Source of the DNA: Amphiscolops sp. MND2022
Taxonomy: Eukaryota
NCBI GenBank assembly: GCA_964187785.1
Contig: OZ076410.1
Coordinates: forward strand, 57,226,001 to 57,290,000
Length of the DNA stretch: 64,000 bases
Direction of reading: 5' to 3'
The notes beneath the pieces are model-generated. The model saw only the letters and a program-made list of their open reading frames with translations, was not told where the DNA came from and made no database searches. Shown piece by piece: positions 384 to 43,376 of the stretch (positions are counted from its first letter, which is position 1; each line of letters begins with the position of its first letter). The position numbers and the translations under genes were made by a program.

Positions 384-805
384 TTAAGAAGAACTTTCAG
401 AACTCAGCGTAGGACGATTAGCTTCAGTTTCCGATTCTTGCTCCAAAGCCATTCGCTGCTCCAAAGTCAAACTTAGCGCTGGCTCCAAGTAGACCGGTAG
501 TTCAGTCATGCGTTCCAACTTGATGCGTTGCTCTTCCTCAGCTGTAACAGGGCAACATGACTTGTCCAACAGCGGACGCTGAGTCATCATCCTGAATTTT
601 TGCTCCAGACGTGTATGCTCAGCGCCCTTCCAGTGCTCCCAGAGATTTTGTAATCCTCTCCCGGTAATTCTAATATCAGCCCGACACATCATGCATCTGG
701 AATAACCATCAATCACGCGTTTGTGTTGTGGGAAATCGACAAATACGCCTACTACTGATGATTCGAAGTTAGACGTTTTCAGCGTGTTGGTTTTCCTTCT
801 CCTGA
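384..805 (-). pseudogene. Zinc-finger exon of antisense cargo gene, member A (hAT-transposase-like ZnF)
   Basis: CMMC-x16-HWKGAEH. The exon follows a long pyrimidine tract ending TTTTGTTTTAG (AG at 807-806, phase 1). The reading continues past two stops as LCFFINCPSSITRFRNVMRLMESWG toward ~215. Confidence 0.7.
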
Positions 806-1402
806 CTAAAACAAAAAGAGCCTCAACCAAAAAGACATATAAAAGAAAGAGAAAGAAAAACAAAAAAACCAAAAACAAAAAAACTGTGACTGGTTATTTT
901 AAAGTCGAATTAACAAAAACTCAACTTAACCTTACGCGTATAACATTACTTGTGATCTTTGAAGTTCTTACCAAGCTTACTCCCCGAGGACGTCCCGGCA
1001 ACACCGTCACCAGCTGACGATGCAGACGCCACCTTTCCTAACCCAGATGGCAGGTGAGACCCCACACTCTAGACATCACGCAGGTGCACCCTGACTCTCC
1101 CTGACTGACACTGAAGGCACAGTATCAGAGGACCGACAAACTGCAGCTTCCGATAACGTCTGGGGAGATTCTGACAATCACTAAAAACTGATGATATAAC
1201 GGAACAACTACAGTATCCAGATAGTAGTAAGGGCATAATTGGAAGTAACGACTAGGAAAAGTCAAAGCTGGTAGAAAGGAATATGTGGCCTGATCAACTA
1301 CTTTTCCCAACCACCCCCACTTACCATAGTTCAAAAGACAAATCGATGCTTCATAGCCCAAATCCGACATTTCACCCTAACCAGTTTCAAAAAGGTTCAT
1401 GT

Positions 1403-2704
1403 ACACCTGACCATTACAGTCGTCACCAACCATATTAGCCCTTTACCTATAAATTCCTCAGGCCAGCCAATATTCCACCCCTACCAAAGAAGACGTTCAG
1501 ATGATGGAGATAAAGTGAGCACACCATTAAATACAAAGCCAAGTATTCGATGCAATAACAAATATACAAGTGGAATTGATAAAGTGAAGTTGAATCCAAC
1601 TGACAGCCACGAACACCAACTAACATTCCAAGGAATACCGACTGGTTATTTCGAGTACTATTTACTCTAATCCGAATACTTCACAACGAACGCACACAAC
1701 AGGATGGCGTGGCATAAATTTGCCACTGTTAAGTATTTACTTCTACACAGACTGATCAGTAGTGACGTCACAATTCACTCTCTCTTTCCTGCTTTTCGCA
1801 GTATCGTTATGTATTTTCGACCGGACTCAACAATGACGCTTACGACTGTTACCACTAGCCATTCGATCTGCTATTCCTACGACACCACTGCTGTTACTCT
1901 CCAAGTAACAAAATGTCCACGAACGAGATTGCCAACAATACCTAGCCACTAAACGATGCTCAATCACATGACAGGATCCAACGACTGAAACCTTCAGTCG
2001 TCCCGAACGAACAAACTCTATGTTCAAACCAATTCAACTACATCCGATTAGCAGCCATGCTATTTTTCCTCCCGCGATACTTCACTTTTTTCAAAAGAGG
2101 CGGAGTGTCTTGCTCAATCGCAAGATTGGATCTAACGACTGAAAACTCCAGCCGTCATAAACTTAGAAAAAACTGTCCAAATATATACATGGAAGAGGAC
2201 CAGCATAACTAGTCGTCCAGTATCCTATACCATTCATGCAAACTAAAGTACTACACATTCTCTGTCATAGTGCATCGATATTTTTTTCTATAATTGCATC
2301 GATTTATCGAATTTAAAAACATTTTCACAGTCATAATTTGGAAATCATTTGAAAATTACGACTAATGCTAGTAGTCGCTCGCCATATTAGAAGCATCGTT
2401 CGAACAATTATTTTTTCATTAGTAGTAAAATTGCAATAATTACATGTAACGAGGATTAGTGCTATCATCACATTGAATACTGCAAGATACTCTAGCCAGT
2501 GATTAACAGGTGCAATTTGATATTGTGTTTCAAGTACAGATGATCTTAACGACTAGAGTCCATAGTCGTACCTGCGAAACGATTATCACCTAGTATATGA
2601 AACAAATAAAAGCCACAACTAAACGACGTTAATTGATAATTGAGTACTTGTAAAAAGTACTAACCAACTTCAGTGAGATTTGGACTACCACCAAGTGTAG
2701 TCGT
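1403..2704. promoter_or_regulatory. Array of 8 spaced palindromes ACGACT-N9-AGTCGT
   Basis: Sites start at 1403, 1842, 1981, 2135, 2196, 2358, 2549 and 2684. Two are perfect (1981, 2549), two have 1 mismatch (2135, 2358) and four have 2 mismatches. All span 21 bp. The regulatory function is inferred. Confidence 0.6.
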
Positions 2705-2823: not shown

Positions 2824-3312
2824 ATGGTAAATACCAGAGCTCAAACTTCGCAAAACAACCCGAATAGAGAAGACGAAATGAACGATTATGACGACAATTC
2901 TAGCGATATTAGTTTGCAAGAATTTAGTACCCGCACCTTCGAGTTAGAGAATATTGTTAACAACTTCAGTGAACAGGAAAGAGAACATGAAAGAGTACGT
3001 ATTGAACGCAGGTTCAATGAAATGAACAGACAGATTAGAGAATTATACCCACTAGTGCGAACCCTAATGGATAGAATTTTCCCGAGTAATCGAGAAGAGA
3101 ATGGCAGTAATTCGTCGCAAAATAGATCCCAAGCCATTCTGACACTGTTTACTGATTGTTTCCTGTGTAACTTTCCCATAGTGACTCAGGACTTTGGAGA
3201 GCATTTTTCTCCGTCTCTGCAATCCACAGGATTCATAAGTTACAAGTTTTCAATAGCTCTTGAATTGAGCTTTCAGTTGGTACATTCACATTTCTCAGTC
3301 TTAAACAGGTGA
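2824..3312 (+). CDS. LTR-embedded ORF (probable Gag N-terminus) reading through the LTR end at 3144 into flanking DNA
   Basis: MVNTRAQ... with a coiled-coil-like stretch (ERRFNEMNRQIRELYPLVRTLM). Its position is analogous to the ORFs in the other LTRs of this window. Confidence 0.5.
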   Translation: MVNTRAQTSQNNPNREDEMNDYDDNSSDISLQEFSTRTFELENIVNNFSEQEREHERVRIERRFNEMNRQIRELYPLVRTLMDRIFPSNREENGSNSSQNRSQAILTLFTDCFLCNFPIVTQDFGEHFSPSLQSTGFISYKFSIALELSFQLVHSHFSVLNR

Positions 3313-3529
3313 GGAGTTATTAGGATTCTCGTTAGAATTTCGGAAGCCAGAATACGTTATCGTAATTTTTCGTACATTTTTGCATGCAAAATTTTTCAGC
3401 AAGTTGAAGCATTTTGACTATGAAAACGAATAGAAATAGTCGTTGTTGGGTGAAATGAGCCTTTAGATTGAGTCTCGGCTGCTGGTACCGGAGATATAGT
3501 CTTTTTTATAATCATAGAATTTTGTCCAT

Positions 3530-3670
3530 CGTGATAAGATACAATCTTGGAATAATGGATTATCTTAGTATGATCTTAATAAGAATCTTGCCATGGGTTC
3601 CATGGTCGCCAAGATGTAGTACGAATTTGGTAAGATCTTACCAAGATGCTAGCAAGAGGGTCAACCCGGG
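3530..3670. mobile_element. Truncated end of a CACTA/CMC-like non-autonomous element
   Basis: A cluster of CAAGAT/ATCTTG and CCATGG motifs like those at 23759-23890, ending in ...GTCAACCCGGG (CCC-type terminus). No partner end was seen. Confidence 0.4.
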
Positions 3671-4899
3671 TGTATATCTGTCTGCATTTCACTTTGGAAC
3701 GATCTTGTTTCAGACTTGTGCCACATTGTGTCAGGCCAAAAACTACTTGAAGTTTGAAATCGAAAAGTGCCTGGAGTTCGTTATCGGGTTCTTCGCTGTT
3801 GTTCAAGGAATGACGTTTGTACTTAAACCAAGTGTTAGAGACAATAATGTTCCACGAAATACAAGACTACCTTCAAGTGGACCCCCTTTTCAAGTATGAT
3901 TTGAATGACACATCATACTTGAAAAGGGAAACTAAAAACCCTTACTCCGAGTTAAGTCTACATTTTGATCCGATCGATCTACATTTTGTTGAGCAAGGGT
4001 TTCTGGGATCTGTAAATTGCTCCGGTTTGAATGTGGAAACTGAAGTGGAACTATCTTTTCCACATTCCCGTACTATACACCTGTGTTTCCTGTAGTTTGT
4101 TTTCACCACGGTTGAACATTGCTTTTATTGATATTTATAATACTTACGTCATTATTGATACTGCTCTGGTGTTATTATTTAACTACAATTCAACTTTTCA
4201 CAGTCTCAATAATATCGTTTGTTCAGATTCAGTTCACGTTCCAACATTTTTGGTTACTTCTAACTCTAATTCTACCGGGTTGGGCTCAAAATAATCGATT
4301 GGATAAATTTAGTTTTGTCTAAAATCTCAAGGATGAAAAATGTCTAATGAGAGCCTTCTCTACGATTAAAGCGATCAGAAGCTTGACAAACCTCTATTGG
4401 TAAATGTTATCAACGAAATACAGTTTTTTTCATAGAACCATGATAACCGAACAACTGTCATCTAAAACTTTAGAATTTATTTTTTTCCTGAAAAATTCAT
4501 GCTCCAAACTGGCTTTTGTTTGCTTTGTAATGAAATTTGAAAACAAAAATTGTAATATTAAAAAGTTTTCATCGACATTCTAATTAATCAAATAAAGCAG
4601 TTTTAATATTGAAGTCGTCTTAAACTGAGTTCTACAACTTTTTTAACCAAAAACCGATACAAGTATTTCGAATCGAATGAGTTACACCGATTTTTTTTAA
4701 ACTGTAACATTAGTTTGAAAGATCGTTTTTTCTTCTCCAAAACTTCATAGAAATACCCATGGACTAGAGATATAGATCGAAAAGGCGATAAAACTTTAAC
4801 AAATAGTACTTATGAACGTGAGATATCCATATGTACAAAATATGCGATCGAGTTGCTAACAAATTGCGCACAAATACATTTTCCACTAACATATTTAAG

Positions 4900-4980
4900 T
4901 GCTGACCAACAGCATTGTATTGTTGACCAACAACACTGTATTGTTGACTTACAATACAATTGTAAGTGCTGACCAACAAT
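4900..4980. repeat. Short degenerate tandem repeat (~21-bp unit, TGACCAACA.CA.TGTATTG); mirrored at ~32311-32430
   Basis: Read directly from the sequence. Confidence 0.6.
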
Positions 4981-5941
4981 ACTTGAATTCGACACTGATT
5001 TATACGAATCGGTTTTTACTGATGATTAAACAATTGGTTAAATTAGATAAAATTACGCTATAAGAGGCGTTTATTTCAAAACAAGTCACGTTCATTTCAA
5101 ACGTTCCTCAACTCTTCTGATTACCAACAACAGGATTAAATTATTACCAGCATTATGATTTGGAAGGTAACATCTCACGTTTTGTGTCTTCTGTTGCTGA
5201 TTTCAATGTCTCTGGAAACGCCGCAGCCAAAGAAAGTGCCTCAAAAATGGTTCGTAGCTTGGTGCCTTTAAGTTCGGAGCTTTAAGGGTGTTTTCCTTTC
5301 AAACACTTACTTTCCTAGTTGGTTCTCAGTTCTCAGGCCGAAGACTTTCGGTAGAGCCGAATGGCTCATTCTTCGTCCCTTTTGATGTTTAATATTCAAT
5401 TTTTTGGACACACGTTAAAAGTTGATTTAGGTAATATCAAATATTTAAATTTTCAAAATGCATCAAACTAAGGAAAATGGATGCAGCATTCAAAACCTAA
5501 ACAATTCTCGGAAAACAAGTGATATTGTCGTCTGGAGAAAATTCAGTGAATTATGTCGGTGCATGATATTAGAAAAGGAAATAACTTAGTTGAAATAGAA
5601 TTTTTATCTAAATGGTATACTCACGTGTGATCTTGGAGGGCTTATCAATTGGACATTCTCTAATCTTTTATTGAGTTCATAAATTTCCTTGATACTATTT
5701 CGCATTTTTTAAGTCGACCCTTTCGATAGAAAACACAGACTATAATAATGGTTTTTTTGAAACCAGCGAACTATAAGTTCTATATGTTGAGTTTCAACTA
5801 ACTTGCTAACTTGCTCCCACCCACTTAGAGTTTTTCTGCACCTTGCGACTTACCTAAGACTTTTTTGGAAAAAATTTTAGAAAATTTTGAAGATTTTTTA
5901 TCACACAATTTTTGATTTTCTGACTTTTTCTGTTAAGGAAA

Positions 5942-6734
5942 CCCATGTTGAGCTTTCCTTGAGAATCTGTACAGATCTGTGAGCCTTTTTTCCTTGAGGA
6001 TCTGTAAAGATCGTGCCACTGCTACGTAAGGACAACTGCAGATCTGCAAGGATCTTTAAGGATGTTCAAGGATTTTCTGTACAGATTGTTCAGGAAATTT
6101 TTTCGCAGGGCTTCTGGGAAACAATGTATTGCATTTTTGGGCTTCTTCAACAAGTATTTTTGCTGACCAAGGCTCAGTCAGTTGAAAATCTCCATCACTC
6201 AAAATTCTTGAGCAGGAAAACTTGTCCCCATCAAGGTAATTTTGGTGTCTGGGGAATGTTTGGTATAGGTTTTGCACGGTAATTTATCAATTTCACTCGA
6301 ACTTTCCAGAAGTTGCTGTTCAACTTTGAGCGGCTCGTTTGCTATATTGACTTCGATTTGGCGGATGTAATTATACACGTGGCTACCGTCTGGGTTGGTA
6401 GAGGTGTTGAAAAAGGAATGTGGTTGTAGTATTTCGGGAACATGGTTAGCTGGAGTAGTTTTAGTAATTGCTGGAATCATTTTAGTCATTTTTGTATGGT
6501 TTATTTACGCCCAATCCTGGAATATCTGTCAGGATCTGTACAGATCTGTACAGATTCGCACAGAAACTTTTTTCAAAACTTTAACTAGGAGGCGTGTGTA
6601 TCTTGTAGAGCACTTTTTATTCAACTAATTTCAATTTCAAAACTTTTTTGACTGGTTAATTTTCGAAAAATCCTGGAATATCTGTCAGGATCTATACAGA
6701 TCTGTACAGATTCGCAAGGAGTGCTCAACATGGG
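5942..6734. mobile_element. 793-bp MITE with ~39-bp imperfect TIRs (CCCATGTTGAGC...), left arm only
   Basis: CCCATGTTGAGC at 5942 and GCTCAACATGGG ending at 6734, AA on both sides, and AGATCTGTAC subterminal repeats. It is absent from the mirrored position (~31300-31380), where about 65 bp of different sequence is present instead. Confidence 0.8.
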
Positions 6735-7160
6735 AAACTGTTTTCCGAGTCTTAAGGGTGACATCGTTTTTTTTGGTTCTGACGGGACTGACGGAGAATT
6801 TTCTCAAAAATTGTGGAGAAGACACGGTTTTTTCGAAACTTGGGAACCCCTTATCCAAAAATTGTTCATTTCTTCAAAGGGTTTTTCAAGTTTTCGGATT
6901 GAAAAAAGCGTTGTGCGAACTTAAGGATCTCCTTTAGTGTTTTTCGGCACTATGAGATTTTTCCGGAAAGTAAAAGATTTCGAAATCTTTTTCTCAAAAA
7001 TCGGATTTTTTGATGTTTGGAGTTGAGGAGAAAGTTCTTTTCGAGTCTTTGTGGGTATTCCTTCGGGTATATTTTGGCACAGTGATTTTTTGCATATTCA
7101 AGACATTTTACTCTATTTGAACCTTGAGCGGGGTGCCGACTTGGGCCGTTCGCAGCTTGT
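6735..7160 (-). mobile_element. Fragment of a Helentron/HINE-like repeat family (mirror ~30884-31300)
   Basis: Its start, ACAAGCTGCGAACGGCCCAAGTCGGC..CAAGGTTCAAATAG, resembles the 5' end of the element at 61236. The internal TCTCATAGTGCCGAAAA motif resembles that element's tandem unit. Confidence 0.4.
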
Positions 7161-8726
7161 TTTTTTTTGGTTTAAAAACGAGATTGAATGAAAGTTGAAA
7201 TATAATGTAATTTTTAGGGGCGAAGTGAGAGATAGATTCGCGATGAAATTCTACAGGCTGAAAAAAGAGGGACAGCTGGATAATTCCCACAGCTTCCAGT
7301 CGTTTTGCGTGGCACAGTGTGAAGCGATGTGCGAAGATACTATTTGCTTACAAGATTGCAAATGTTTTGCATGTTTGGTCGTTTATTTTCCAGACTTCAA
7401 GTGTGCCAGCAAACCATGCAGCTCAAAAGATGCTCGACAGAAATGAATAAATCCTAGTCACAAAACTATGAACTACATACTACTACACTATTTAATGGCT
7501 TTATAATTCTAGCTTTAAATTGACAAGTTCTTTGGTTCTATGCGGTCCACAACTTGAAGAATTCGCAGGAAACCTTTGATTTTCAACAAAGTTTTCCAAT
7601 TCGTTGTTCTTTTTCTTCATAGAGCTAGTTTGAAATCTCAGAAGTAGCTAGATGATGGTAGTTAGACGACCCAGATAGTAGGAGCCCGCTCCGAGGGCAC
7701 AAACCCCCGAAGTTCAACTTTTACTCCACAAGCATCGTACCATCATTCTCTTACTTACATAGCTTTTACAAAATCTCTCACTTACTTAGAGCTTCTCTGG
7801 CTTCTCAAGATGACGTTTTTGTTACCCTTTTTGAATTCAATAAATACGCATTACTTTCATTCAAAGAAATAGTAATGTGAGGTAGTACGTTCCCTCTTAT
7901 TGGATTGTCGGAGTCGATATCCATACTATGTGCAAGAAAAACATTAGTTCACAAAACTTTGTCCACAAAAAACTGCACACAAAAATTGTTTTGTTGAATG
8001 GGAAACTCCGTATAATAACTCAAATCATACAATAATTGACGATAATCTGCTCTCAAACAAGATGGAATTCTTGTCTAAACGTCTCAAGTCGGCGCTACAC
8101 TTGAGGCTCAAAAAGCGCATTTTTAAAGACTTTTTAAAATGAGAAACTAACAAAAAAGCGTCGAAACACCCGAAGGTGCCTTTCGTGCTCGGAAAACGCT
8201 TCAAAAGTTTGGATATACCGTGCTGGGGCACATCGAAGTGCCGTTTTGAACCCTCCTTTTTTCGAACCCTCCTTTTTTGTCCTCGTTCCTTAGGAAAATG
8301 CAAGTTACTTCGAATATAACTTCAAAATGTATTAAAAATTTTTCGTATGTTGAGCTATCTGATGCTCGATCTCGCCTTTGGTGAAACGCAGCTTTCGTCG
8401 GATGTAACGTCAAATCACATCGGCGTGAACACAAATGAAAATTTATAAAGAAAATGAAATAAATATTGAGTCACTTTACGGAAATACCATTATCAATGAT
8501 GCTAGGAAAAGCTCAATATCTGGATGAGAATATAGAATTGGATTGTCGTTTATGCGATATCGATATGATTCTGGTATTTGTACGTACGCATTTATGCACA
8601 TGTAAGCAAAATTACAAAATCTTACATTGCAAGACATACGTCGGACGAATACATGAGTTTGTTGTAAAACATAACTCTGTACATTTCAATACCGACAGAT
8701 AGTTACGTAACAACATTAATTCATCA

Positions 8727-10237
8727 TGTAGTGTTGGAGTTTAGGTTACTTGGAAAATTGTTTTCGGATATTTCCTCATGGACATTCTCATTATGCTCGA
8801 TTGTAACAGCTGAACACCCCTGTTCAGATGAAGCGCTGGACAAGTTATATACTTTGGAGGATAGATTCTCAATCAGCCTTAAGATTTCCCTTTGGCCAAA
8901 TTCAGCATCTCGCAAACGTTTAGAGATTTTGTTTTCGATTTTGTTAGAGATATCTTCGAAAGTTCGTTCTGACAGCTGGATGTTCTCATCGTTAGATAAA
9001 CTCGCTACTTCTACATCTGAGTGGCCACTAGAAGGGTCACTTTTTAGTATGCGCTTATGAGATTTTTCTGGCATAGTTTGAGTGGAAAACAGGTAATAGA
9101 TTAATTATCGAGTGATTCTTTAGGAACTGGGAAACAATTCAGTCTATCAACTGACAAAACACTAGTTGGAACAATAGTAATACATGCAAGAGATTCAAAC
9201 TGATCGAAGTATGGAATTTAAAGTAAACGAGATTGAGTTTTATCAAATAGAAAGCAAGTAACAAATTCAAGTTTACACGAGAATTGAAAATAATCTTGAG
9301 TCCTTTCCTAATCCCGCGCCAGGTATGTATACTTTACGCTAGACACGCGGGAAAAACCTCGCGCGTGAATTCACACCTTGTTCAATTCGGTGTACTTATA
9401 AAGCGGGGAAAGCCAAATAAAGTAATCTTCCTCGTGACTCGACGGTCTGCTTCATCTCATTTCCTGCCGCTACCCAATTCCGGGTACCTTTCTTCTTCAT
9501 TCACCGCTTTTTCAAGACTCCGAGTCAAAATAGGCACAGAAGTTCATGAACCTAGCTACTGAAGCGGGAATGGGAAATGATTTTTTTTCGACAAAAAAGA
9601 AATATCACAAAGAAATGGATTACGAAACTGCACTCAATATAGAGGACTGACACTCAAACAAACTTCAGACATCGTCATCATTCATCACTTCTCGAATTAT
9701 TGGGGGAGGGGGGAGGACGTTGAATCAATGGATGAATGGCAACAATCAACGGATATGAATTAACCATTATGCAAGATTCATAACTTAGTAAATTACGTGA
9801 ACTATTCCACTCATGACACTGGCAAACGGTATAATAGTCGACAGTTACATGTTAGTCGTCCTGGTGGTTGACTCAAAGTCAACTTCATGTAGCCTCATTT
9901 TGCAGCTTCAAATTACGTCGGGAGTATTAAGAGTATCTCTAATTCAACACAATAACACACAATGGGTAGGATAACTAGTAATTGACAACACATCAATGCG
10001 GTCTTTCAATTATAATGACGAGTAGGTTATCCTGGCTGCCGACCTAGACAGAAGATTTTAGTCGATTGCCTGGGCTGTTGACTCAATTTTGAAAAGCTCA
10101 TTTTTACAATCATAGTATTAAATCATCATTTATATCGTTCCTTTGGATCACTTTTAGTGTTCTCTTCTGGAATGAGTTTCTTTTAAGCCCTGTATTACTA
10201 TTAGAATCACATTTGGCATCGTGTAATTGCAATCACA
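8727..10237 (-). mobile_element. Solo LTR (1511 bp), left-arm copy
   Basis: TG...CA termini and a 5-bp TSD CATCA at 8722-8726 and 10238-10242. Contains ORF 9074-8724, which ends at the LTR terminus. Confidence 0.9.
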
Positions 10238-11583
10238 CATCAAACTTTTCAGTCGAGCGACTGAGCGTGCGTCCCATCTTTGCATGACTGGTATGCTGCC
10301 TGGGAGGTTGTCTCAGTTTAGCTAGCATAATTGCGCTCAACGCTAATTGGTTAATAGGCGAGAACATGTAAAATTAGTTGCTGTCGGCCGCTGCTGGTTG
10401 ACGCGCTAGCTGAATTGAATTCAGTCAACGCCCTAGCTGTTTGACTGTAAACAAACTACCGCACTTATTATTATACAACTATTTACATATGTATGTATTG
10501 CAGGTACTGCACAATGGTGTTATTATCATTAATAGTACATTTATATAAATATTTATTATTGTCAAAAATAGTTTGCTAGTTGTTTTCCCTTTCAGGTTTT
10601 ATGGTGATTTTCCAGTCTTTTTCTTGTCATCTTTTCGCTTTCTTCCTCTGGCGTTCCTCTTATGTTTAGAGTCTCGCAGCACTGTCGGGGCTGCGACAGT
10701 CCCCGGTTTTCTTGAGGGGCGTCCACTATTGGAGGAAGTGGAGAAAGTGGCCTGAAGGGTGAAGAATCATTGAGTCATATGACATCCAGGATGAATCAGT
10801 TGTCAAATCGCTGCCCGAAAAATAACTAACTGAGCTTGGGTTGCTAGAGACTGGGCAAGTTGTTCCATTACTGAGGCTGAATAGGCAGCTAGCCATATGG
10901 TCGTATTTTCAGGGCGGGCTCATAAATGTATCGTCAGGGATCACTGGATAATGTATTGTAAAGCGGCAATAAGTTGGTTGGTCTTCTTTTGCCGTATGAA
11001 GTAGCGATCTAATGGCTACCTCATGATCCAAAACAATATGGCCGTCATCCGTTTTGACAATTTCATAACGATTTTCAAATACTGATTCTTGTTGTGCGTC
11101 ACTAATCTTAAATGTTGATTGTGCTTGGGGTAATTGTTGGTAGCTATCTTGGTCGCGATCTAATAGGAAACGATGGTTAGATAACTTGAAATTTTGTGAC
11201 AGAATTCGTTTAATCTCAGTAAAGAGAGTATTACAAAAAATTGTAGAAGAGTAGACGACTGCTCAAGGATTAGCTAAACGTTCAAGTAATGATTTCTTTT
11301 CCCTTTAATCTTGTTCACGCCGGTTGCGTTTTCAACTGGCAGACTGAATGATTTCCATTATGTCATAATAGTATTTTTTGATACTAGTGCTTTCATTGGT
11401 TTCACGCCACGTCTTCGATTGAATGGTATTATTTCAGATTGTATTGTTCAAAGCATGGCAGATTCGACTGACGAAAATACTGCTCGTTTTGCTCTGTCTC
11501 AGGAGATTGGAGTGACAAAAAGTGTTGCCGAAGCTTTCTGAAGGAGAGAAGTCTGTGGAGTGGAGTCAGGTGAGACACAGAAA

Positions 11584-11614
11584 GAGATAGATAGATAGAT
11601 ACAGAGAGAGAGAG
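11584..11614. repeat. (GATA)n/(GA)n microsatellite; longer mirror copy at 19741-19810
   Basis: Read directly from the sequence. Confidence 0.9.
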
Positions 11615-11629
11615 TGGTGTCTATTCTTC

Positions 11630-15405: not shown

Positions 15406-15605
15406 NNNNNNNNNNNNNNNNNNNNNNNNNNNNNNNNNNNNNNNNNNNNNNNNNNNNNNNNNNNNNNNNNNNNNNNNNNNNNNNNNNNNNNNNNNNNNNN
15501 NNNNNNNNNNNNNNNNNNNNNNNNNNNNNNNNNNNNNNNNNNNNNNNNNNNNNNNNNNNNNNNNNNNNNNNNNNNNNNNNNNNNNNNNNNNNNNNNNNNN
15601 NNNNN
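15406..15605. other. Assembly gap of exactly 200 N at the axis of the inverted duplication
   Basis: N run counted directly. A round length indicates a scaffolding placeholder, so the true size is unknown. Confidence 0.99.
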
Positions 15606-15703
15606 CCATACAATGAGCAAATGGTGGCCCCGAACCAGAGAGTCTCGAATTATCCTCAAAGACGGACTGCCTAACCGGCAGTACTACGGAGAAACTGGGA
15701 AAG

Positions 15704-19720: not shown

Positions 19721-19736
19721 ATAGAAGAATAGACAC

Positions 19737-19790
<54 letters not shown>

Positions 19791-28942: not shown

Positions 28943-28957
28943 GTTCATGTAGAATCG

Positions 28958-29766
28958 TCAGTCAGTTTTTTCATTTTCATCGATCAGTACGACTTTCTTT
29001 CCATCGTCAAATAGTTCAAAGTTCCGTATTTTCAATTTCTCAGGCGTTATACCGTTGTTGATCAGTTCTCTTCGCTTCTTCAAACACGGATTTTCTTTCA
29101 AGGCATCTTCTCTTGACAACATAGGCATCGGAAACATATTCTCATCTTTGAGTTCAGTACGTTTCCCGTAGCTTTTTGCTAGCACCAAGCCTGCTCCGTG
29201 TTCCGTGTTGAAGGTAACAAGGACAGTCCTGGACTTCTTTCTATCTCTGTCAAATTTTCCAAGTCTTCTCAATTCTTTGACTTTTGTGTCAACGCCAATT
29301 TTTGTAAAAACTTCGTTGACTTTTTCGGTGGTTGGGACAAGATTTTCATATTTTTTTTATCTAGATCCTCGGGGATCCCATGTATTCTCAGATTTGATGA
29401 GATGTTGTGGTTCAGGATTTGTTTTTGATCTGATTCCGGCAAGGGTCTCCTCGTAGAAACTATTTTAACATTTTTTGCCGCTACTTCACTATAGCTGTTT
29501 TGGATTTCTTTACAGGAGACTTTCAAGACTTCTACTTTTTTGTCAATTAGGGAAGTTAGTTTCACCTCAAGCGATTCCAGTTTGTTTTCAATTTTGAGGG
29601 CTTCGACTTGTTCGTTCGCTTTGTGTATTGTCCAACTTTTGATGATGTTATCTCGTTCATTGTTTTCAATACAGGTGTTACATAATAACATGCAACTGAG
29701 CCCGAGTTCTTTTATTCCATTTAAGGCTACATTCGAGAGGCCAGTACACGAAGGTTCAAGGTGCAT
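28958..29766 (-). pseudogene. LINE ORF1 (PHD-like Cys cluster, coiled coil, RRM-like NLRIHGIPE...RRLGK...RTVLVTF)
   Basis: ORF fragments 29766-29269 and 29272-28958 carry motifs typical of CR1/L2-group ORF1 proteins. Confidence 0.75.
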
Positions 29767-32700: not shown

Positions 32701-34310
32701 GTTTAAGACGACTTCAATAGTAAAACTGCTTTATTTGATTAATTAGAATGTCGATGAAAACTTTTTAATATTACAATTTTTGTTTTCAAATTACAAAGCA
32801 AACAAAAGCCAGTTTGGAGCATGAATTTTTCAGGAAAAAAATAAATTCTAAAGTTTCAAATGACAGTTGTTCGATTATCATGGTTCTATGAAAGAAACTG
32901 TATTTCGTTGATAACATTTACCAATATAGGTTTGTCAAGCTTCTGATCGCTTTAATCGTAGAGAAGGCTCTCATTAGACATCTTTCATCCTTGAGATTTT
33001 AGACAAAAATTTATCCAATCGATTATTTTGAGCCCAACCCTGTAGAATTAGAGTTAGAAGTAACCAAAAATGTTGGAACGTAAACTGAATCTGAACAAAC
33101 GATATTATTGAGACTGTGAAAGTTGAATTGTAGTTAAATAATAACAGAGCAAAATCAATAATGACGGTATCTATTATAAATATCAATAAAAGCAATGTTC
33201 AGCTCTGTTGGAAACAAACTACAGGAAACACAGGCGTATAGTACGAGAATGTAGAAAAGATAGTTCCACTTCACTTTCCACATTCAAACCGGAGCAATTT
33301 ACAGATCCCACAAACCCTTGCTCAAGAAAATGTAGATCAACTTTTTAACTCGCCCAGAGCGGTTAAACGTTACAGTACCCAAATGGGTTGTGTGGATGGG
33401 TGAAATTCGGATCTACACAGATTTCAAATGACAAATCAAGCTTGAAAAGGGCGCCCACTTGAAGGTAGTCTTTCATTTCGTGAACATTATTGTCTCTAAC
33501 ACTTGGTTTAAATACAAACATGATTCCTTGAACAACAGCAAAGAACCCGAAAACTCCGGGCACTTATCGATTTCAAACTTCAAGTAGTTTTTGGTCTGAC
33601 ACATTGTGGCACAAACCTGAAACAAGATCGTTGCAAAGTGAAATGCAGACAGATATACAGTAGTGATATCATTAAACGCTGCATACCGAATATAGTTCGC
33701 AAATCTCTTACTAGAATATCTCAAGATCTAGACGTCTGAAAGTTATCGGGTTTTGTTCGCTTTGTAGAGACGTTCCGACTCTATAATTTCATTTATATAA
33801 TGTATATCAATTCAGCATTTCGATACGGCGCCATTGTATGAGATTCAAAATTTGCCGTCACAATTTCAATTAGGATGCCAAAAATTAGTCTCCAGAAGCA
33901 ACGCCAGGCCATTTACCTCCACAAACAAAACTGGAAAACTTGCCGATTTTCCTGAGTTGATTTCCAGACGAATTTCTTTCGTATCACAAATTAATCGATA
34001 TGCAACGAAATATTGAAAATGTAAGCATAATTTTCTTGCAAAATAAGTTTCCGCAAGATTAAACTTTTCCCGGAAAAACAATTTTATGGAGAAATAAAAA
34101 AATGTTTTTTTCTAGAAAATGTTTCTGGTTGGAGAGAAGCAGTTTTCTTCATTTTTTCAAATCATTTTGTTGAAAAAAAAAGATATGCCATGTAGTAACT
34201 TCGAGAATTTCTATAGTTCTTCATAAAGGAAGCAAACATGTATCTATCACGAGAAAATTTCAAAGTTACACAAAAAACACGACAACGTCAGTGGGATGGG
34301 GGATGGGAGG

Positions 34311-35673
34311 TGTCGCAAGCTGCCGCCTGCGACGGGAATTTCTATCAAATTCCTCAAGAGCAGGCTGAAATAAACCCTCCACCTGGAGCACTCCCTATTT
34401 AAACCTTAAACACTGATGGTACCTACAGCTACATTAAATTTAGCCACTGTAGAAACCCTTTTCATGTTTTAGACGTGCTGATTTATAGTCCGTACGGCTA
34501 CAATAAAATTATTGTTTTTAACGTACCGAGTTACAGTTAATTAGATAACAAGACGCTCGCTTAGCACAGCGATTAGCGCTGTAATATTTCCTCTAGCCTG
34601 ACGGACGCTACGTCCGTCACGGTGGAAACACAATACCTGTTCCTTATTGTTATACTAACCACATGAAATGTTTCTACAAGTGTCATGAACATGTAAACAG
34701 AACATCTAGATTTAGTTAAATGCTTTCGTATGAACCAAGACCTTCAGTTCATGCCGCCTTTTACTAACCCACCCTCCCCACCAACCTTATGATGCTATAT
34801 ATAGTAGTGACGTAATGTTGATGTTATTTACCTCAGTTACTATTTTTAGTATCGTGACCACTAGAATTTTGCTCGTCATGCAGGGAAAAGTATAAATAGT
34901 CGGGACCCAGAGTTCAGACACACAACTTTTTATGCTACACTGATATCATTGCATTGCTACCAATCAAACTTAGTGCTACCCTTTCATTAGTCAATTTTCA
35001 TTTGTATACCGGTCGTACCTGTCTCAAAAAGTATTACTCATTTATTCAAGACGATAAGTCAATTCACTGTAAAAACGTTGATTCTTTTCAATGCCTTCAA
35101 ATAGGAAGCAGAAAGCGAAAGAAAGGCGTTCTAGACTGTTGGACATCATGTCAGACGTAGAAAATGTTGACATAAGGTTAGGAAGTTATTCAAGAGATGA
35201 GGATAGAAACAATCGAAGTGAAGATGTGTTAAATTTGGACTTACGGTCAAGCAGACGACAACAAAGTTCCAATCTAGTTGGAGAAGATTTCAGGTGTCTT
35301 CTGGACACTAATAGTAGGGATAATAGGTGAATGACCATTGAAAAAACCTGAATGATTTGTGAAGAGATTTCCTACCAGAAGTCCAGGAAGCTTAGTGAAA
35401 CTAGATCTAGCTTGAATTATCGAATACAAGATGCAATTACTACGGCAATAGCCGAGAAAGTGCTTCCTTTTATCCAGAATACAGTAGGTGTGCAGGGGAT
35501 GAGTAATTTCACCGTAGAGGACCAAAGGGAGGCTCTACAAAGAAGCCCTGGATCCCCAAATTCCCAGAAAACAAGGGAAAATGACCACCAATTCATGTTT
35601 CACACGTGAAAATCAAAGACAAGCGCCTAGACAGAATTCAGTGGACTCTTATACAGGCGACCGATTCGGGACA
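34311..35673 (+). repeat. 5' LTR (1363 bp) followed by PBS-like TGGTGACAGG at 35674
   Basis: TGTCGCAAG...CGGGACA|TGG. Positions ~35283-35673 align with ~44133-44520. Confidence 0.8.
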
Positions 35674-36790: not shown

Positions 36791-37391
36791 AAACTATATT
36801 TGCCACGACCCAAATAAATGAAAAACTCCAGGTTAGACAGAATATAAAATCTGACCCTCCAAACAAATGTTACACTGAATACTACACATCACTTTAAGAA
36901 ACATAATCCGCTGACTGGCAGCAGCAAATGACTACTACACCTACTTTTCCAACCACTTTGGACTACATGCCCAACCGACTACAACACGATGCTTCCAGTA
37001 TACGACCTATAGCCTTTATAGATGACTATAATCCAGTTTACCTCGTCCCAGACTATGGCTTGAACATCTATTGGGACACTCATTCCTTCAATCAACTCCA
37101 CCTATATTTCTACCATAAGTTTGACAAACCAACATGGGTAATATATCCGGATTCTCATGAAACCAACCAAGCTCTAACTACGACCTTGCCATTGCATGTG
37201 TTGACACATGCCTACACAAATGTCAATTTACTCATCAACCAATTCATCTTGAGCCAGAGAACGAGATTCACCGTGGAGGACTGGTGGCTACAGCCGTTGC
37301 AGCGGGTTATGTGAACACCTTAGTCACAAGAACCGGGGAACCAGACTTTATACCGCTGACAACAAATCTTGGCCTCAATTAAAAACGACGA

Positions 37392-40300
37392 ATGCTCTAT
37401 TTTCCAATGAGTTTCGGCGAACTAACTTTAGATGGCCTGGTAGAAACGGGAGCACTATCCGGCGCAATCCCAGCAGCTGATCTACGGGAAATCCGATTGT
37501 TAGCACCTCATTCTATTATCAGAGAGGGCCCAGCACCCAACTTTCAAATAATGGTAGCTAATGGGCAGCTGGAAACTCCGAAGAACACAGTCGAACTGAA
37601 ATTTGAAGTCGGCGACAAAGATTTCCATGAGATATTTATAATCATGGAAAAACTCATTAGTCCCTCAATTGGTCTTTCATTCCTCCAACGGAATAATACC
37701 AATTGGGACATGAGACAAGAGACAAGGTGTCCTAAATTTCCTCTTTTTCTCAATGCAACTGAAAACAACGGAGATCACAAGTACACCAATGTCATGGAAC
37801 CAACCTGCATCTGGGAGGACGTCACCGTCCCACCAAATGATCGAAAGCTAGTCCTGACGGCTTCACAACTGTATGGCTTCACAACGACCGCAATATTGCC
37901 TTCTGTGCTGCTATAGTCACCTCAACCAGTGGTCGAGTCAAACTTCATCTGAACAGTTTCACTGACAGCCTCTATACCCTCAAAAGGGGTACGCAAGTTG
38001 CTAACTTCACTGTCCTGACTCCGGAACATTTGAAATATGTGAAACCTATAGATCCGGTGACCACGTGGCACCTATTGCAGGACAATCCTGAGAATGCTGC
38101 TTACTACGCAAGTAGTTTGATAAAATCTACAAAACCAGAGGACTACAAGGACAACTACTGGTTTCCCACACCAGAAGACCCTGGGGACCCTCAGCCCCAC
38201 AGGCCGAATCAAAAACGGATTTTTTTACAAATTGCTCAACCTTCAGAAACTCAAAAAACTCAACACTCTCGGAAACCCTGAGTCAAGACAACAATTTCTG
38301 AACAAATTGGACTGTTCGGATTTTATGGTACAACAAGATGAAATTGCTCGCATAGAACACCTATTAGTCGAACTTCATAATATTTTTGACGGACATCGCT
38401 TCTATATTGGTTTGAACGAAGAATTTGAAGTACAGTTGACGCCAAAGGATGACTACCCAGCGTACAGTCAAAACTTACCGACGCTTATTATTCTGAGAGG
38501 CGACATCCTTGTAGAATTGCCGCTTCTCCACCGATATGGGATAATAAAAAAAGTCCCATTTACCAAATAGGGAAGCCCAATATTTGCCTAAAGGAAACCG
38601 AATGGCAAGTTGAGACTTTTAGTCAAATTTCGCATATAAACAATTTGATTTGTGCATATGGCAGGCAATAAACTCTTTTGCAAACTATACTGCTCTCAAG
38701 CCTACCACTGCCTACAATTGGCTGACCAAAAGTTTATTGAGATGCTTGCATTTAACTTGGCGAGCCGAACATTTGCCTACCGTCGACTGACACAAGGCCT
38801 TAGTTGAGCCCTTTCAGCCTTTTTTATATTAATGCGCAAATGTTTGGACAAAACAATCAAAGCAGACCAATGTGCCCAATATGTTGACGATATTGGTATA
38901 GCTGCAAATTACGCCGAAGAGCTCATCAACAACCTTAGGGCTACTTTTCAGTGCATTCAAAAGGGTGGCCTCAAGCTTGGGATGCATAAATGTCACTTTG
39001 ATGCAACGGAAATTCATTTTATGGGTCGTGCCATCACTCATGCATCCTTGAAGCCGCAGAGACCACGGCTCAAAAACTCCCTGGAAAATAAGAAACTTCC
39101 TAAATCAAAGAAAGGACTTGAACGCTACTTGGGATTGTTAATTTACTATCAAAATAACATCCGGAGGCTTTCAGAAAATATTGCCGTGTTATTCAAAATG
39201 TTAACAAAAGACGAAAAAATCCTGGTAACACCGGACCTGTTGGAACAATTCACCAAGATCAACAAGGGTCTTCATCGATGTTGTGAACTGGCACTCAAAC
39301 AACCCCAACCGAACAAGCAAATTGCCCTTATGACAGACGCTAGCTTTTCGGCCGCAGGGTACGCAGTTCATATCGAAGACGATCTACTCGAGAAACGTAC
39401 TTCAACAACACAACTCTTCGCATCAAGGACTTATGGATCCAATTCCTTCAGTCCTACACAAAATGTCCATATACGCGAATGCATTCTTTGCAATTTTCTT
39501 TAAATTCAAAGAATTGGGACATATATTTTGGGAATTCCCAAAACCGGTGATTATAATAACAGACGATAAACCGGTCACACAATTGTTTCAGACAGAAATT
39601 ATTCCATCGACACTCTGGAATGCCTGTCACTATGTAATCTAGCTCAATTTCAGTATTGCGCATATACCCGGCAAAAACAATACAGCTGCTGACTATTTAT
39701 CTTTTCTGGAAATCTCTCCAAAAGATAAATTGGTCCTCAGAATCGGAGAAGATATTCCGACAACTCTGATTGAACTACATGTCCAATCGACGGGAGTAGC
39801 TAAGGAGGAGCAAATATTCTACACGGAGTACGACGACGAGACTGAAGAACAAACCTGGCAATGGAAGCAAATGGCTGGAAAGCACCCAACGAATCGACCA
39901 CCGGACATTTTATTTGAAAAATACACCGTACATAAAAGTGACAAACTTTCAACATTTCAACAACTATCAAATATCAACTCTTTTGCAATTGAGCAGAACA
40001 ACAACATCATATTACAACAACTACGACTTGAAATTTTGAAAGAAGATTACTCAGAGACCTTCCTACTTCAAGATAACCGATATCATCGTTACAGTCGCCA
40101 ATTCGATTGAATGTCCGTTACAGATGAAATCTTTACCAGACAGTATTTTGATAAAACGGGATCTGTAAAACACAATCAGGTGCTATTACCGAAACATCTC
40201 GTCACTGAACTGCTTGAATCTCTACACAGCAAGGCTAATAAACATCCAGGAATTTCCAAGATGCTCATAGAAATTCCACAAGAATACAACTACCCTGGCA

Positions 40301-41200
40301 CAGCAAAAACTATTAAAACACGGGGATAAGGTTGTGGAATCTTCATCAAGGACAAAAGATTTCCTAATTCGTCTATTACTCCCGAATTTCTCAATTTTCC
40401 GGAATGGAACTTTGGCCCTGAGGACGCAATGCAAATCAACTTGTTACCGAACCTACCGCCAAATGGAAGATATGAAATTTTCATTACAGCTATGGATGTC
40501 TTTTCAAGATATCTTTTTGCTTTCCCAATTACTGACGCATCGGCCACAAATACGGCAAACGTTATCATTGATATAATGACCAAGCATACCTATTTGCCCA
40601 CCACTTTAATCACCGACAAAGAGACAGCCTTTGCGTCAAAGTTGGTTGCCGCAATTGCTCAAGTTCTGGGAATCCAAGTTAAATGCACCAGAACAAAACA
40701 TCCAAAAACCATCGGTAAACTGGAACGCACTCATGCTAGTCTCAAAACAAATCTCCAAATGGCCTCAGGGGACAACCGGCGTTAGTGGCATAAGTATCAG
40801 CCCCTAGCCGTATTAAACTATAATACTTCCTATCACGCCACTCTGGGCTGTGAACGAATCTCGAATTTTCCACGGACGAATTCCATTCAATATATTAAAT
40901 CACAGATTGTGTCTTAATCCTAACACAAAGGTCTTTTTGACTGTTGATTTTGCAGACGAATTCCAGCAACGAACACAGAGTTTATTAGACTCAACAAAAA
41001 AACATCATGCAATCCTTTTTGAAATTTAAAGAATAATATGACGGAAAGGCCCAAGCTGCGCCTCTGCAACAAAGTGACTTTTGTTTCATACTACAACCTA
41101 TTGCTGACCACCAAGTCTCAAAATTTCTACTTTGGGAATTTAGGTGGACCGGACCTTACATTGTGGAAAAAGTCTTACCGAACAAAAGCTTCTTGTTTCA
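37392..41200 (+). pseudogene. pol: pol: aspartic protease, possible dUTPase-like remnant, RT, RNase H, integrase with GPY/F
   Basis: LVETGA (DTG variant); YVDD near 38880; LMTDASF; integrase HPGISKM, AMDVFSRYLFAFP, LITDKET, GKLERTH; WTGPYIV. Many stops and frameshifts. Confidence 0.92.
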
Positions 41201-43376
41201 AAACGTGGAGGACTTTCAATTGGACAGTTCGTGCACTACTCCAATTGTGACTGAAATTACAGCTAATCAATCTGGGTCTAGTTGAGAAGGCGCCCATGAT
41301 AACGGAAATCAAACACGCTTCAGCATCTGTCTGGACTTGAATCTGTCCGGTCCGCTGAAGGAACACTCTACTGATTTGGTCTCCACGCCAGTACCGGATA
41401 AAAGCGAGCAGAAAGACTCCGTCATTGGGGAATTCGACTGAATATTCACCGTTGGCATTGACGTGGGAACCAATGTCCTCGATGATGATTTCAACGAACA
41501 TATGGTGAAACAGTACCTAAACAAGAGAAACACTTAGTACTGCTCTGTTTACTTCTACGTTGAGCTTCCCTAAGGGCACTATCAGAAAAAGGGGGTTTAA
41601 TAAAACAATGAGAGCGTACTTACGGTCAAGCGCTCCTTCCCCCAGTTGAAATCAGTGAACAGGGCTTGGTGATTTATAATGACACCGACATCGCTCCAGA
41701 ACTTCTTCAGGACTTCGAGGTCACTGTAAGCGAGGAAAAACTTCCCATGGACAGAAAATTGTACTCGGGCCCTGTTGTCGGACGAGGTAGACATATAGTC
41801 CATTTTCGGACGTTGTACTCGTCGTAGAAACGTATTTCTGGCATATCTCTACCGAATCAGCTTTTATGGACTTGGGAAGTTCCAGTTCTAATCGGTAAAG
41901 GGTCAGCAACTTGCCGTATTTCCCTCTGACCTTATGTATTTCGGAATTGGTGACTGGGTTGACCTTCTAGAGATCTTCATATCTCCGCCTCTGATACTTC
42001 CGGAGATGTTTCTCTTTGGAGTGGTGGCGTAGAATTTCCCTGGCTCCTTTGCCGTGAATGAAGATCTGGGCCTTACATATTTGGCAATAAAACTTGTAAG
42101 AATTCAATCTTGGATCAACAGGCCCAGAGACGAAGGTGCGCGTCCACTTCTCCAAAGAGTACCCAATACTAGAGAATCATCATCACTACGGATGGCTCCA
42201 CTGGTGTCACTGTATTGTCTAGATGCCATACTTCCACCTCTACGAACACCAGGATCACCAGAATTTCTGGGTGACGGAGCGTGGCTAGCAGGAGTACCCA
42301 GGTTCAACTCACTTGCACGCTGAATAAGACTTTATAACATATCGCAGGAAGCCCTAGGTGTTTCATCAGCCTCAACGCTAAGTACACTGCTGATCTGGTC
42401 CTCTGTGAGAGTGTTGGTTTAGTGAGCTTTCGGGAAACAAAAGGGGTCTATATTTGAGAACTGCTGCTTTATCAGGGCTCGGCTATTTGGCCCAAGTGAT
42501 GAATCCCGATGTACCTGGGAGTCTAGCAGACACGAAGTTTTTTCTGAATCACTTACATCCAGATGTGGTTCCGGTGACTCCAAGTCCAATGCTTGGACAA
42601 TGGTGGACCCGGCAGGATTAGTGGTTGACTCCGCATCAATTTCAAACCCAAACTCGACCGAGTTTGGGCGGTGGCTGGATGTCAACGAAGGAAGAGTTTC
42701 CGAATCTGGGTCTCTTGATGGCACTACGGGACTGATTGACATTTCCGAAACTGACAGTCTGTGCACAAGGATCAAGTAAAGTCACAGTTGGGCTTGAACT
42801 GTCGGGTTCAAAGCCTTGTGGTACATTCAAGGCAGAAGTAACACACACTGGGTCACTTTCATTTTCTCCCAGAAGGAAGCTGTGCTCACTAGGTGGTTCT
42901 CGATCCAAAATTTCATCCCAGACTCCTCATCTTACGTGCAAAATATGATTGGATACTCTTACCGGAACTACTATTGTCAGATGCGAGCAAGTTGACTAGA
43001 GAAAGCGAATAGTCTGAAGATGGCGGCCGTTGCGCCGCCGGGTCTATTCCCGTGAGAGGAGTAGTAGTGGTTTTCTCGCCTGATTCTTGGTCAGATGATG
43101 CCAATGAAAGGACATCATCAAATGTTTCGAAGGCAACACTTCAGGTAAAGACGAGTTAGTGATCAATTGATGCGTGTCTGCCGGAGCTATTTCTCGAGCA
43201 ACTGGTCCTGAGGTTTCTATGGTTGTGTTAGGACGTACGGTTGTGGGGACACTAGTTGTACTCCTGGTTTCTGACGACGTTTGTGTTGCTTGGCCGTTTG
43301 ATTCTTTACCTGAACGGAAAGGAATAAACTCGCGCGTTTCACTTCCTGCAGATGAGTCCATCTTATCGCTTTTCAA
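41175..43376 (-). pseudogene. Antisense spliced ZnF/hAT-like cargo gene, member C
   Basis: Ser/Thr/Pro-rich N-terminus; ZnF CQIC-x16-HHSKEKH (ORF 42155-41967). A 107-nt GTAAGT...TTTAG intron at 41623-41517 joins WGKERLT to VLFHHMFVEIIIEDIG in phase 0. The following EYSVEF..DG..LLAFIRYW resembles the first RNase-H strands of hAT transposases. Confidence 0.8.

Follow-up and report, generated by a model that had tools for sequence, protein, structure and literature searches.

We find that three zinc-finger stretches within a 64,000-nucleotide window of the Amphiscolops sp. MND2022 assembly (GCA_964187785.1, contig OZ076410.1, positions 57,226,001 to 57,290,000) are decayed copies of one old, fast-evolving gene family. 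The family encodes a protein with the predicted fold of a hAT transposase that appears to be catalytically disabled, and it is carried, facing backwards, between the integrase gene and the right-hand repeat by a group of Ty3/Gypsy LTR retrotransposons that is very abundant in this 1.07-Gb eukaryotic genome. The first-pass annotation had described the three members (here A, B and C) as highly divergent relatives with identical finger spacing but no DNA-level similarity, and we confirm that observation. On the minus strand, A reads C38-x2-C41-x16-H58-x5-H64 in the frame that starts at 806 (window 615-695) and C reads C49-x2-C52-x16-H69-x5-H75 (window 42006-42086), whereas B, on the plus strand, reads C60-A-I-S63-x16-H80-x5-H86 (window 13059-13139). 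The second Cys is Ser in this copy of B and in its mirror, but all 10 other B-family copies fetched have CxxC. The strict pattern C-x2-C-x16-H-x5-H occurs twice in the six-frame translation of the window (A and C) against a mean of 0.03 in 100 shuffles, and an extended shared motif occurs 3 times against 0. In a 15-sequence alignment across the families V28, C41, H61, H67 and R75 are invariant and F27, C44, S49, G54 and P116 nearly so, although the best blastn match among the three segments has an E-value of only 0.09.

The interpretation offered in the first-pass annotation, of an old and diversified cargo family carried by several retroelement lineages, is supported by our data, albeit with corrections. 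Profile-profile comparison of the family alignments with hhalign gives probabilities of 99.1% for B-C (E 5.5e-19, 299 columns), 95.8% for A-B (E 6.5e-9, 285 columns) and 67.8% for A-C (E 4.9e-5, finger only), and the C-family HMM also finds the B fingers of the window (E 6e-5). The distance and orientation of each finger relative to the nearest pol had been singled out in advance as the measurement that should distinguish retroelement carriage from residence in TIR-bounded transposons or host loci with random orientation. The latter outcome was not seen: in 197 of 197 pairs of finger and pol C-terminus hits (67 B, 74 C and 56 A) the finger lies at a fixed, lineage-specific distance (2.4, 3.3 or 4.3 kb) from a Gypsy pol C-terminus and is always convergent with it. 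The pairing covers only those copies that appear in both hit lists, about 40-50% of each finger list, and TIRs were not searched for directly. The carriers have the pol architecture expected of Ty3/Gypsy elements (protease, RT, RNase H and integrase in that order), with Pfam hits to gag-asp_proteas, RVT_1, RT_RNaseH, Integrase_H2C2 and rve on the 1456-aa and 1490-aa ORFs next to the B-type and C-type genes, and integrase domains next to the A-type gene. Colinear pieces of the B-family HMM lie on the minus strand of the C-type and A-type elements, such that the whole gene is present in all three lineages.

All copies in the window are degraded. The finger exon of A spans 387-805 on the minus strand, with an in-frame stop at 384-386, and matches the A-family HMM with an E-value of 7.5e-75; homology continues at 249-377 (E 6e-11) and further exons lie to the left of the window, at window -348 to -1113 in the fetched locus L001. 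As the first-pass annotation had claimed, the finger exons of A and B both begin after a phase-1 acceptor: TTGTTTTAG stands before the exon at 806-814 (minus strand) in A, with its AG at 806-807, and at 12874-12882 in B, with its AG at 12881-12882. This AG occupies a single alignment column in 10 A-family and 12 B-family copies and conservation begins immediately after it. Upstream of the A exon we place a putative 166-nt intron at 806-971 (minus strand; GTAAG ... TTGTTTTAG), based upon a conserved GGTAA(G/C) donor block and the conserved AG in the alignment of A-family copies. It is preceded by an open exon piece of 32 codons at 972-1067 that contains no Met, and no start codon was found for it within the window. 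Four matches (strict or with one mismatch) to an ACGACT-N9-AGTCGT palindrome, not eight, were found at 1981-2569, with only one more among the other fetched loci (in L002), and these are no more than a lead to possible binding sites.

Member B (12883-15199, plus strand) is a pseudogene of the whole finger plus hAT-like protein, with at least 12 frame breaks but no extra DNA; it was traced by tblastn with an 880-aa relative and by HMM pieces that are colinear over HMM positions 41-756. Its mirror (15707-18437, minus strand) is 97% identical, shares nearly all of the frame breaks, and is not an independent member but rather the right arm of an inverted duplication (3671-15405 against 15775-33659, 91-97% identical by blastn; 96-98% complementary as inverted repeats). 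Paired coordinates sum to about 31177, placing the axis at about 15589, within the assembly gap at 15406-15605. The gap touches no reading frame of interest here, and the listed ORF at 15337-15915 runs through N and is meaningless. It does, however, lie beyond the 3′ ends of both B copies, where the pol of the host element would be expected. The first-pass annotation had left the host of B unestablished; in the window it is cut off by the duplication axis and gap, but complete B-type copies sit behind a Gypsy pol.

Member C (41600-43400, minus strand) is a remnant of the first exon (N-terminal region plus finger), broken into several frames; it was traced by tblastn and by HMM pieces that cover C-family HMM positions 1-650. 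The hAT-like core exons are missing through a deletion of about 2.5 kb relative to complete copies, and the finger lies about 0.8 kb from pol here as opposed to about 3.3 kb in 74 copies. The element that holds it retains a frameshifted pol (36811-41210, plus strand), which is 58-77% identical by tblastn to that of a complete C-type element and gives an RVT_1 hit for 38832-39500. It also retains remnants of the 5′ LTR (35287-35660) and the 3′ LTR (44134-44506), both assigned to the plus strand and 81% identical over 378 nt, the latter about 0.7-1 kb beyond the 5′ end of the antisense gene remnant. This agrees with the earlier description of C as antisense and just upstream of a 3′ LTR. Flanking repeats were seen for this element only, because the element of A runs off the window and that of B is interrupted as described above, and so the presence of paired LTRs is undecided for the carriers as a whole. 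Complete C-type genes contain canonical short introns, one of about 95 nt (GTAAGT...TTGTTTTAG) and three more of 68-98 nt, although the spliced models were analysed exon by exon and the joined protein was not built, searched or folded.

The cargo is far more than a finger. A complete B-type protein of 880 aa was modelled with AlphaFold2 (pLDDT 73.5, with the core above 90), and the top 11 Foldseek hits in the PDB are all Hermes transposase with a probability of 1.00. Structural alignment with VIA-align gives Z 12.3-12.9 over 383-401 residues (model 178-707 against Hermes 114-609), the next hit being RAG1 at Z 5.3. This comparison was made for the B-type protein only, A and C being linked to it through HMM and hhalign comparisons. 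The nearest protein-language-model neighbours are the FAM200/ZBED5/GTF2IRD2 and other hAT clusters (score 0.91-0.93). No sequence method connects the protein to hAT, and the link rests on one predicted structure and on language-model features. Pfam searches with the three window peptides, with complete relatives and with all 26 members of the B alignment found nothing above threshold, and a profile search of PDB sequences found nothing. A profile search of 1.84 billion representatives returned 821 clusters at E<=0.001, but the 150 listed are unnamed and mostly ORF fragments, and so provide no bridge to named hAT families. Word-based protein searches returned 35, 118 and 53 relatives, all from ENA and unnamed.

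The conserved DDE triad of hAT transposases is absent: the beta1, beta4 and 'SERxFS' positions carry no conserved acid in A, B or C, and the E position is Q in B and C and R in A. These positions were read by motif and secondary-structure alignment rather than from a residue-level superposition. The finger is BED-like by motif and context and a beta-beta-alpha arrangement is predicted, but there is no Pfam zf-BED hit and the model of the finger domain (pLDDT 54) has no Foldseek match at E<=0.001, so that its assignment to the BED class is not settled in either direction. It is not a classical C2H2 (Krueppel-type) finger, because the spacer is 16 rather than 12 residues and the only zf-C2H2 matches were two sub-threshold hits for C (17.7 and 15.5 bits against cut-offs of 27 and 29). 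Likewise, there is no Pfam hit to the C-terminal hAT dimerisation domain (PF05699) although the structural alignment does run to Hermes residue 609, an outcome which neither establishes nor excludes that domain.

Despite the decay of the window copies, the family is under strong purifying selection. Uninterrupted frames of 870-905 aa are found in many sub-lineages, dN is 0.06-0.48 while synonymous sites are saturated, and dN/dS is 0.05 where it could be computed. The first-pass annotation had also proposed comparing the cargo tree with the RT tree for co-divergence, and here strict co-divergence was not found. Among three B sub-lineages (880, 893 and 873), the identity of the pol C-terminus is 89% for 893-873, 67% for 880-893 and 65% for 880-873, whereas that of the cargo is 87% for 880-893, 62% for 893-873 and 59% for 880-873, which shows that modules have been exchanged. 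The pol of a further lineage (870) is 82-83% identical to that of 880, but its cargo was not obtained, and a full RT tree was not compared with a cargo tree.

Based upon these observations, we favour, with good confidence, a model in which A, B (with its mirror) and C are degraded copies of one accessory gene family carried by a Gypsy clade, encoding a variable N-terminal region, a single finger and a complete hAT-transposase fold comprising an RNase-H-like core, an all-helical insertion domain and a C-terminal part. Our analysis demonstrates the homology of the three lineages, the hAT fold (as predicted for the B-type protein), the fixed antisense position behind pol, the short introns of the C-type gene, the conserved acceptor in A and B, purifying selection and the exchange of modules. 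The remainder of the model is inference. The gene would be transcribed from its own promoter near the 3′ LTR, and its introns would survive retrotransposition because they are antisense to the genomic RNA of the element. Transcription, splicing and translation are inferred without RNA evidence: no RNA run was found to contain the element, and four runs examined (one sample, one study) behave as DNA contigs of a high-copy repeat without intron-like joints at the expected places, which is no evidence for or against expression. In this view, the protein no longer cuts DNA but acts as a sequence-specific DNA-binding accessory factor, most likely regulating transcription of its own element, or alternatively guiding or tethering integration; no function was assayed. 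A single ancient acquisition of a hAT transposase gene, followed by divergence with the host elements and occasional recombination, is the simplest reading, and several captures are not needed.

Of the alternatives, that which survives best is that the protein is a hitch-hiker or serves some role other than regulating its own element, such as a dominant-negative inhibitor of competing hAT transposons, an antagonist of host silencing or an integration-targeting factor. Purifying selection shows that the protein matters but not for what, and inactive transposases that keep their DNA-binding and oligomerisation surfaces act as repressors of their own family in hAT and P elements. We regard this as unlikely, but nothing in our data separates these roles; retention in three lineages with thousands of first-look candidates does argue that the gene benefits the carrier rather than merely riding on it. 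Several independent captures of a host or transposon hAT-like gene are more improbable still. The cargo lineages are very divergent (under 30% identity) and cargo and pol groupings disagree among B sub-lineages, but all three lineages share the same place, antisense orientation, architecture and loss of catalytic residues. Moreover, the rank order of similarity agrees for cargo (B-C closest) and integrase (A about 37-38% identical to both B and C; B-C 53% over the whole pol). Template switching between co-packaged relatives explains the incongruence more simply, and no free-standing source gene was seen, although none was searched for systematically. Nested insertion of ordinary hAT transposons into Gypsy elements would fit the fold, but is very unlikely given the fixed distance and orientation across many sub-lineages, the lost catalytic residues, the introns and selection on the gene together with the element. 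Finally, a chance resemblance of three unrelated ORFs, for which the lack of DNA similarity and the merely sub-threshold C2H2 hits for C might be cited, is refuted by profile-profile E-values as low as 5.5e-19 over about 300 columns beyond the finger and by the excess of the motif over shuffles.

A more far-reaching reading is possible, although we consider it slightly less likely than not: that a DNA-transposase gene was adopted long ago by a retrotransposon and became a standing, selected accessory gene of a whole clade of animal-type Gypsy elements. The disabled hAT transposase would now serve another class of mobile element as its own DNA-binding regulator or integration guide, kept spliceable by its antisense orientation and passed between lineages by recombination. 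This would be domestication of one transposon class by another and not by the host. If the protein works for its carrier, a retrotransposon has recruited the DNA-recognition machinery of a DNA transposon, which bears on how LTR elements acquire regulatory or targeting functions on the way to retrovirus-like complexity. The members studied here add that the gene is old, since the lineages are recognisable only by profiles, that it is present in at least three deeply split Gypsy lineages, each with thousands of first-look candidates, and that it is modular, pol and cargo having been re-assorted. There is also a practical consequence, in that these genes have long intact frames and introns and gene predictors will call them host zinc-finger genes.

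Extra antisense genes are already known in plant Gypsy lineages and in complex retroviruses, but we found no paper in the literature searched describing one with the fold of a hAT transposase. The hAT transposases themselves (Hermes; PDB 2BW3, 4D1Q, 8EDG) share the overall fold over about 395 residues and an N-terminal Cx2C...Hx5H finger in front of the core, but there is no sequence-level match, the D, D and E residues are not conserved here, and the gene is not a free TIR-bounded element but a fixed antisense gene inside Gypsy retrotransposons, with introns in the A and C lineages. Domesticated, catalytically inactive hAT-derived host genes (the ZBED5/FAM200/GTF2IRD2 group; plant DAYSLEEPER, PMC3499209) likewise retain a transposase fold as a probable DNA-binding protein under selection. 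Those are single-copy host genes, however, whereas here the 'host' that adopted the transposase is itself a high-copy retrotransposon, and no Pfam family of that group (DUF4371, Dimer_Tnp_hAT) is matched. Bdelloid rotifer LTR retrotransposons (PMC5408684) are animal elements with additional captured ORFs shared between retroelement lineages, and the abstract of that study mentions no hAT-like antisense gene. Plant Retand/Tat Gypsy elements (PMC11963269; reviewed in PMC7264820) carry antisense ORFs in the same place between pol and the 3′ LTR, with a predicted DNA-binding product and as a lineage-wide feature. Those ORFs contain the Transposase_28 domain (PF04195), which is not matched by any member here, no introns are reported for them (PMC11963269), and the elements of this genome belong to other Gypsy lineages with a cargo that has a full hAT fold. 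In the complex retrovirus HTLV-1, the HBZ gene is a spliced antisense gene transcribed from the 3′ LTR side that encodes a nuclear regulatory protein, but this is an unrelated bZIP protein without transposase ancestry, and its carrier is a retrovirus rather than a Gypsy element.

Translation of the three places confirms the zinc-finger motifs that had been read there in the first-pass annotation, and that observation holds: member A reads CMMC-x16-HWKGAEH at 615-695 on the minus strand, member B reads CAIS-x16-HFGSKLH at 13059-13139 on the plus strand, and member C reads CQIC-x16-HHSKEKH at 42006-42086 on the minus strand. In a six-frame translation of the window the strict pattern occurs only at A and C, against a mean of 0.03 in shuffled sequence, and the three DNA segments share no detectable nucleotide similarity, as had been claimed. 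The second cysteine of B is a serine, both in this copy and in its mirror, whereas all 10 other B-family copies that we retrieved have CxxC, so this is a lesion of this copy.

The mirror of B is explained by a large inverted duplication (3671-33659), whose arms at 3671-15405 and 15775-33659 are 91-97% identical. Paired coordinates sum to about 31177, and the axis (about 15589) therefore falls inside the assembly gap at 15406-15605. Both B copies end before the gap (B-family HMM position 756-772 at 15199 and 15707), such that no reading frame discussed here crosses the run of N. The arrangement could be a real palindrome or an assembly join of two haplotypes placed head to head, and our data do not distinguish between these possibilities. 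The arms differ by an insertion of about 6.6 kb at 23758-30387, which is present only in the right arm and holds a non-LTR retrotransposon on the minus strand (RVT_1 at 26729-27403 and Exo_endo_phos_2 at 28179-28724), i.e. a LINE insertion. The two B copies share nearly all of their frame breaks and are one member seen twice.

Each of the three segments finds at least 150 scored matches in the 1.07-Gb genome from which the window comes, with first-look candidates numbering 3,500-6,000. We built alignments from 53 A-type, 35 B-type and 118 C-type proteins and compared them profile against profile. This gave a probability of 99.1% for B-C (E 5.5e-19, 299 columns), 95.8% for A-B (E 6.5e-9, 285 columns) and 67.8% for A-C (E 4.9e-5, 68 columns, corresponding to the finger). 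In a 15-sequence alignment of finger exons from all three lineages a V, C, H, H and R are invariant, while an F, the second C, an S, a G and a P are nearly invariant, and the C-family HMM alone also picks up the B fingers of the window. The homology extends about 200 residues beyond the finger. The proposal that the three members belong to one diversified family carried by several retroelement lineages is supported, although pol and cargo have not strictly co-diverged (see below).

Complete B-type copies have uninterrupted frames of 870-905 aa. One 880-aa representative, encoded on the minus strand of a retrieved genomic locus (L037:4685-7324), has no Pfam hit and no hit to PDB sequences. Its AlphaFold2 model, which was built with 26 family sequences, has a pLDDT of 73.5, with values above 90 through most of residues 220-770. 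A Foldseek search of the PDB with this model returned the Hermes hAT transposase as the top 11 hits, at probability 1.00, and VIA-align gave Z 12.3-12.9 over 383-401 aligned residues (model 178-707 on Hermes 114-609), with RAG1 as the next entry at Z 5.3. Those language-model neighbours that have names are likewise hAT-derived clusters (FAM200, ZBED5, GTF2IRD2 and DUF4371). The positions at which hAT enzymes have their D, D and E, namely the end of beta1, the end of beta4 and the C-terminal 'SERxFS'-type helix, show no conserved acidic residue in A, B or C, and the E position is Q in B and C and R in A. This is an inference from motif and secondary-structure alignment. None of the tests that we applied placed the finger in the BED class, and it is BED-like only by its spacing and by its place in front of a hAT core.

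All three lineages encode the whole protein. The B-family HMM finds colinear pieces on the minus strand of a C-type element, at HMM positions 44-199, 224-364, 369-405 and 506-727, and does the same on an A-type element, at 45-96, 309-373, 368-433 and 618-755. In the C-type gene the pieces are separated by canonical short introns, one of which runs GTAAGT...TTGTTTTAG (about 95 nt), while three more are 68-98 nt long. In A and B, an AG preceded by a T-rich tract stands in one alignment column just before the finger exon in every copy examined, across sub-lineages of 62-89% protein identity; sequence conservation starts exactly there and both boundaries are phase 1. The phase-1 acceptor proposed for A and B therefore holds, although no RNA data were available to support it, and the gene models were analysed exon by exon without building or searching the joined protein. 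Upstream of the B-type finger exon (L037:7325-9000 on the minus strand, L041:1-1500 on the plus strand and L047:4096-5547 on the minus strand, all retrieved loci, and 11300-12882 of the window on the plus strand), lineages that are 59% identical in the cargo share four to five short conserved patches, each in one dominant frame and separated by unalignable stretches. This fits several small 5' exons, as another first-pass note claims for 17649-19344. The C lineage differs in that the first ~530 aa of its proteins (e.g. L038:8122-9711, minus strand, in a complete C-type element) form a long, Ser/Pro/Thr-rich and poorly conserved N-terminal extension before the finger, where the B-type open frame has under 80 residues and A-type frames have 40-80.

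Next to the complete B-type and C-type genes lie ORFs of 1456 and 1490 aa on the other strand, which have protease, RT, RNase H and integrase domains, and an integrase ORF lies next to the A-type gene. In the complete C-type element a 216-aa sense ORF (L038:4648-5298, plus strand) overlaps the end of pol, upstream of the last exon of the antisense gene. Distance and orientation relative to pol had been put forward in advance as the test of carriage by retroelements, and we searched the genome with the C-terminal 390-460 aa of each pol and paired the resulting places with the finger places. Every pair is convergent, that is tail to tail, in 67/67 cases for B (typically 2.4 kb between finger and pol), 74/74 for C (3.3 kb) and 56/56 for A (4.3 kb). 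The pairing covers only part of the copies, so that unpaired hits say nothing, but no same-strand or distant arrangement turned up among them. Between sub-lineages dN is 0.06-0.48 while synonymous sites are saturated, and the two pairs for which dS could be computed give a dN/dS of 0.05. The function of the protein, by contrast with its homology and position, is inferred.

Agreement between the histories of pol and cargo was the other test that had been named beforehand. At the deep level the orders agree: cargo is closest between B and C, and for pol, B-C identity is 53% over the whole protein, while the integrase of A is 37-38% identical to both. With only three lineages this is not a test. 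Within B, however, the groupings conflict. Of three B sub-lineages (893, 873 and 880), 893 and 873 are 89% identical in the pol C-terminus but 62% in the cargo, 880 and 893 are 67% identical in the pol C-terminus but 87% in the cargo, and 880 and 873 are 65% and 59% identical, respectively. The distances of the three pols to the C-type outgroup are about equal (54-58%), and a rate change therefore does not explain the conflict. In addition, the pol of a further sub-lineage (870) is 82-83% identical to that of 880, yet none of its copies is among the 99 best cargo matches to 880, which reach down to 65%, and single copies show pol 93% with cargo 65%, and pol 83% with cargo 66%. Modules have been exchanged between lineages, as expected from template switching between co-packaged RNAs.

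All of the copies in the window are degraded. Member A has an in-frame stop at 384-386, beyond which homology continues at 249-377; further exons lie left of the window and its pol would lie about 4 kb left of the window. On the 5' side of gene A there are four ACGACT-N9-AGTCGT palindromes at 1981-2569 (0-1 mismatch; 0.06 expected), and in the wider stretch (1400-2700) ACGAC/GTCGT occurs at 5.4 per kb against 1.55 per kb in the window. A similar enrichment (5.4 per kb) is seen upstream of an A-type gene at another locus (L039), and these are candidate binding sites for the finger protein. Just right of this upstream region a 162-aa ATG ORF (2824-3312, plus strand), which is acidic and coiled-coil-like at its start and was called an 'LTR ORF' in the first-pass annotation, could be the start of the gag of a neighbouring element. 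Member B has at least 12 frame breaks without intervening DNA in addition to the Cys-to-Ser change, and its pol side is cut off at the duplication axis. One of these breaks coincides exactly with a run of about 13 G (13376-13390), and a similar poly-G tract of variable length lies in the putative intron upstream of A-type finger exons (loci L004-L012), such that homopolymer length errors may add to the apparent decay. Member C keeps a frame-broken first exon at 41600-43400 but has lost the core exons, and it sits in an old element with LTRs that are 81% identical and a frameshifted pol.

Full-text literature searches found no description of an antisense gene with a hAT fold in a Gypsy element. 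The closest descriptions that we found are the antisense Transposase_28 ORFs of plant Retand Gypsy elements (PMC11963269), the additional ORFs reviewed for plant LTR elements (PMC7264820) and the captured ORFs of bdelloid LTR elements (PMC5408684).
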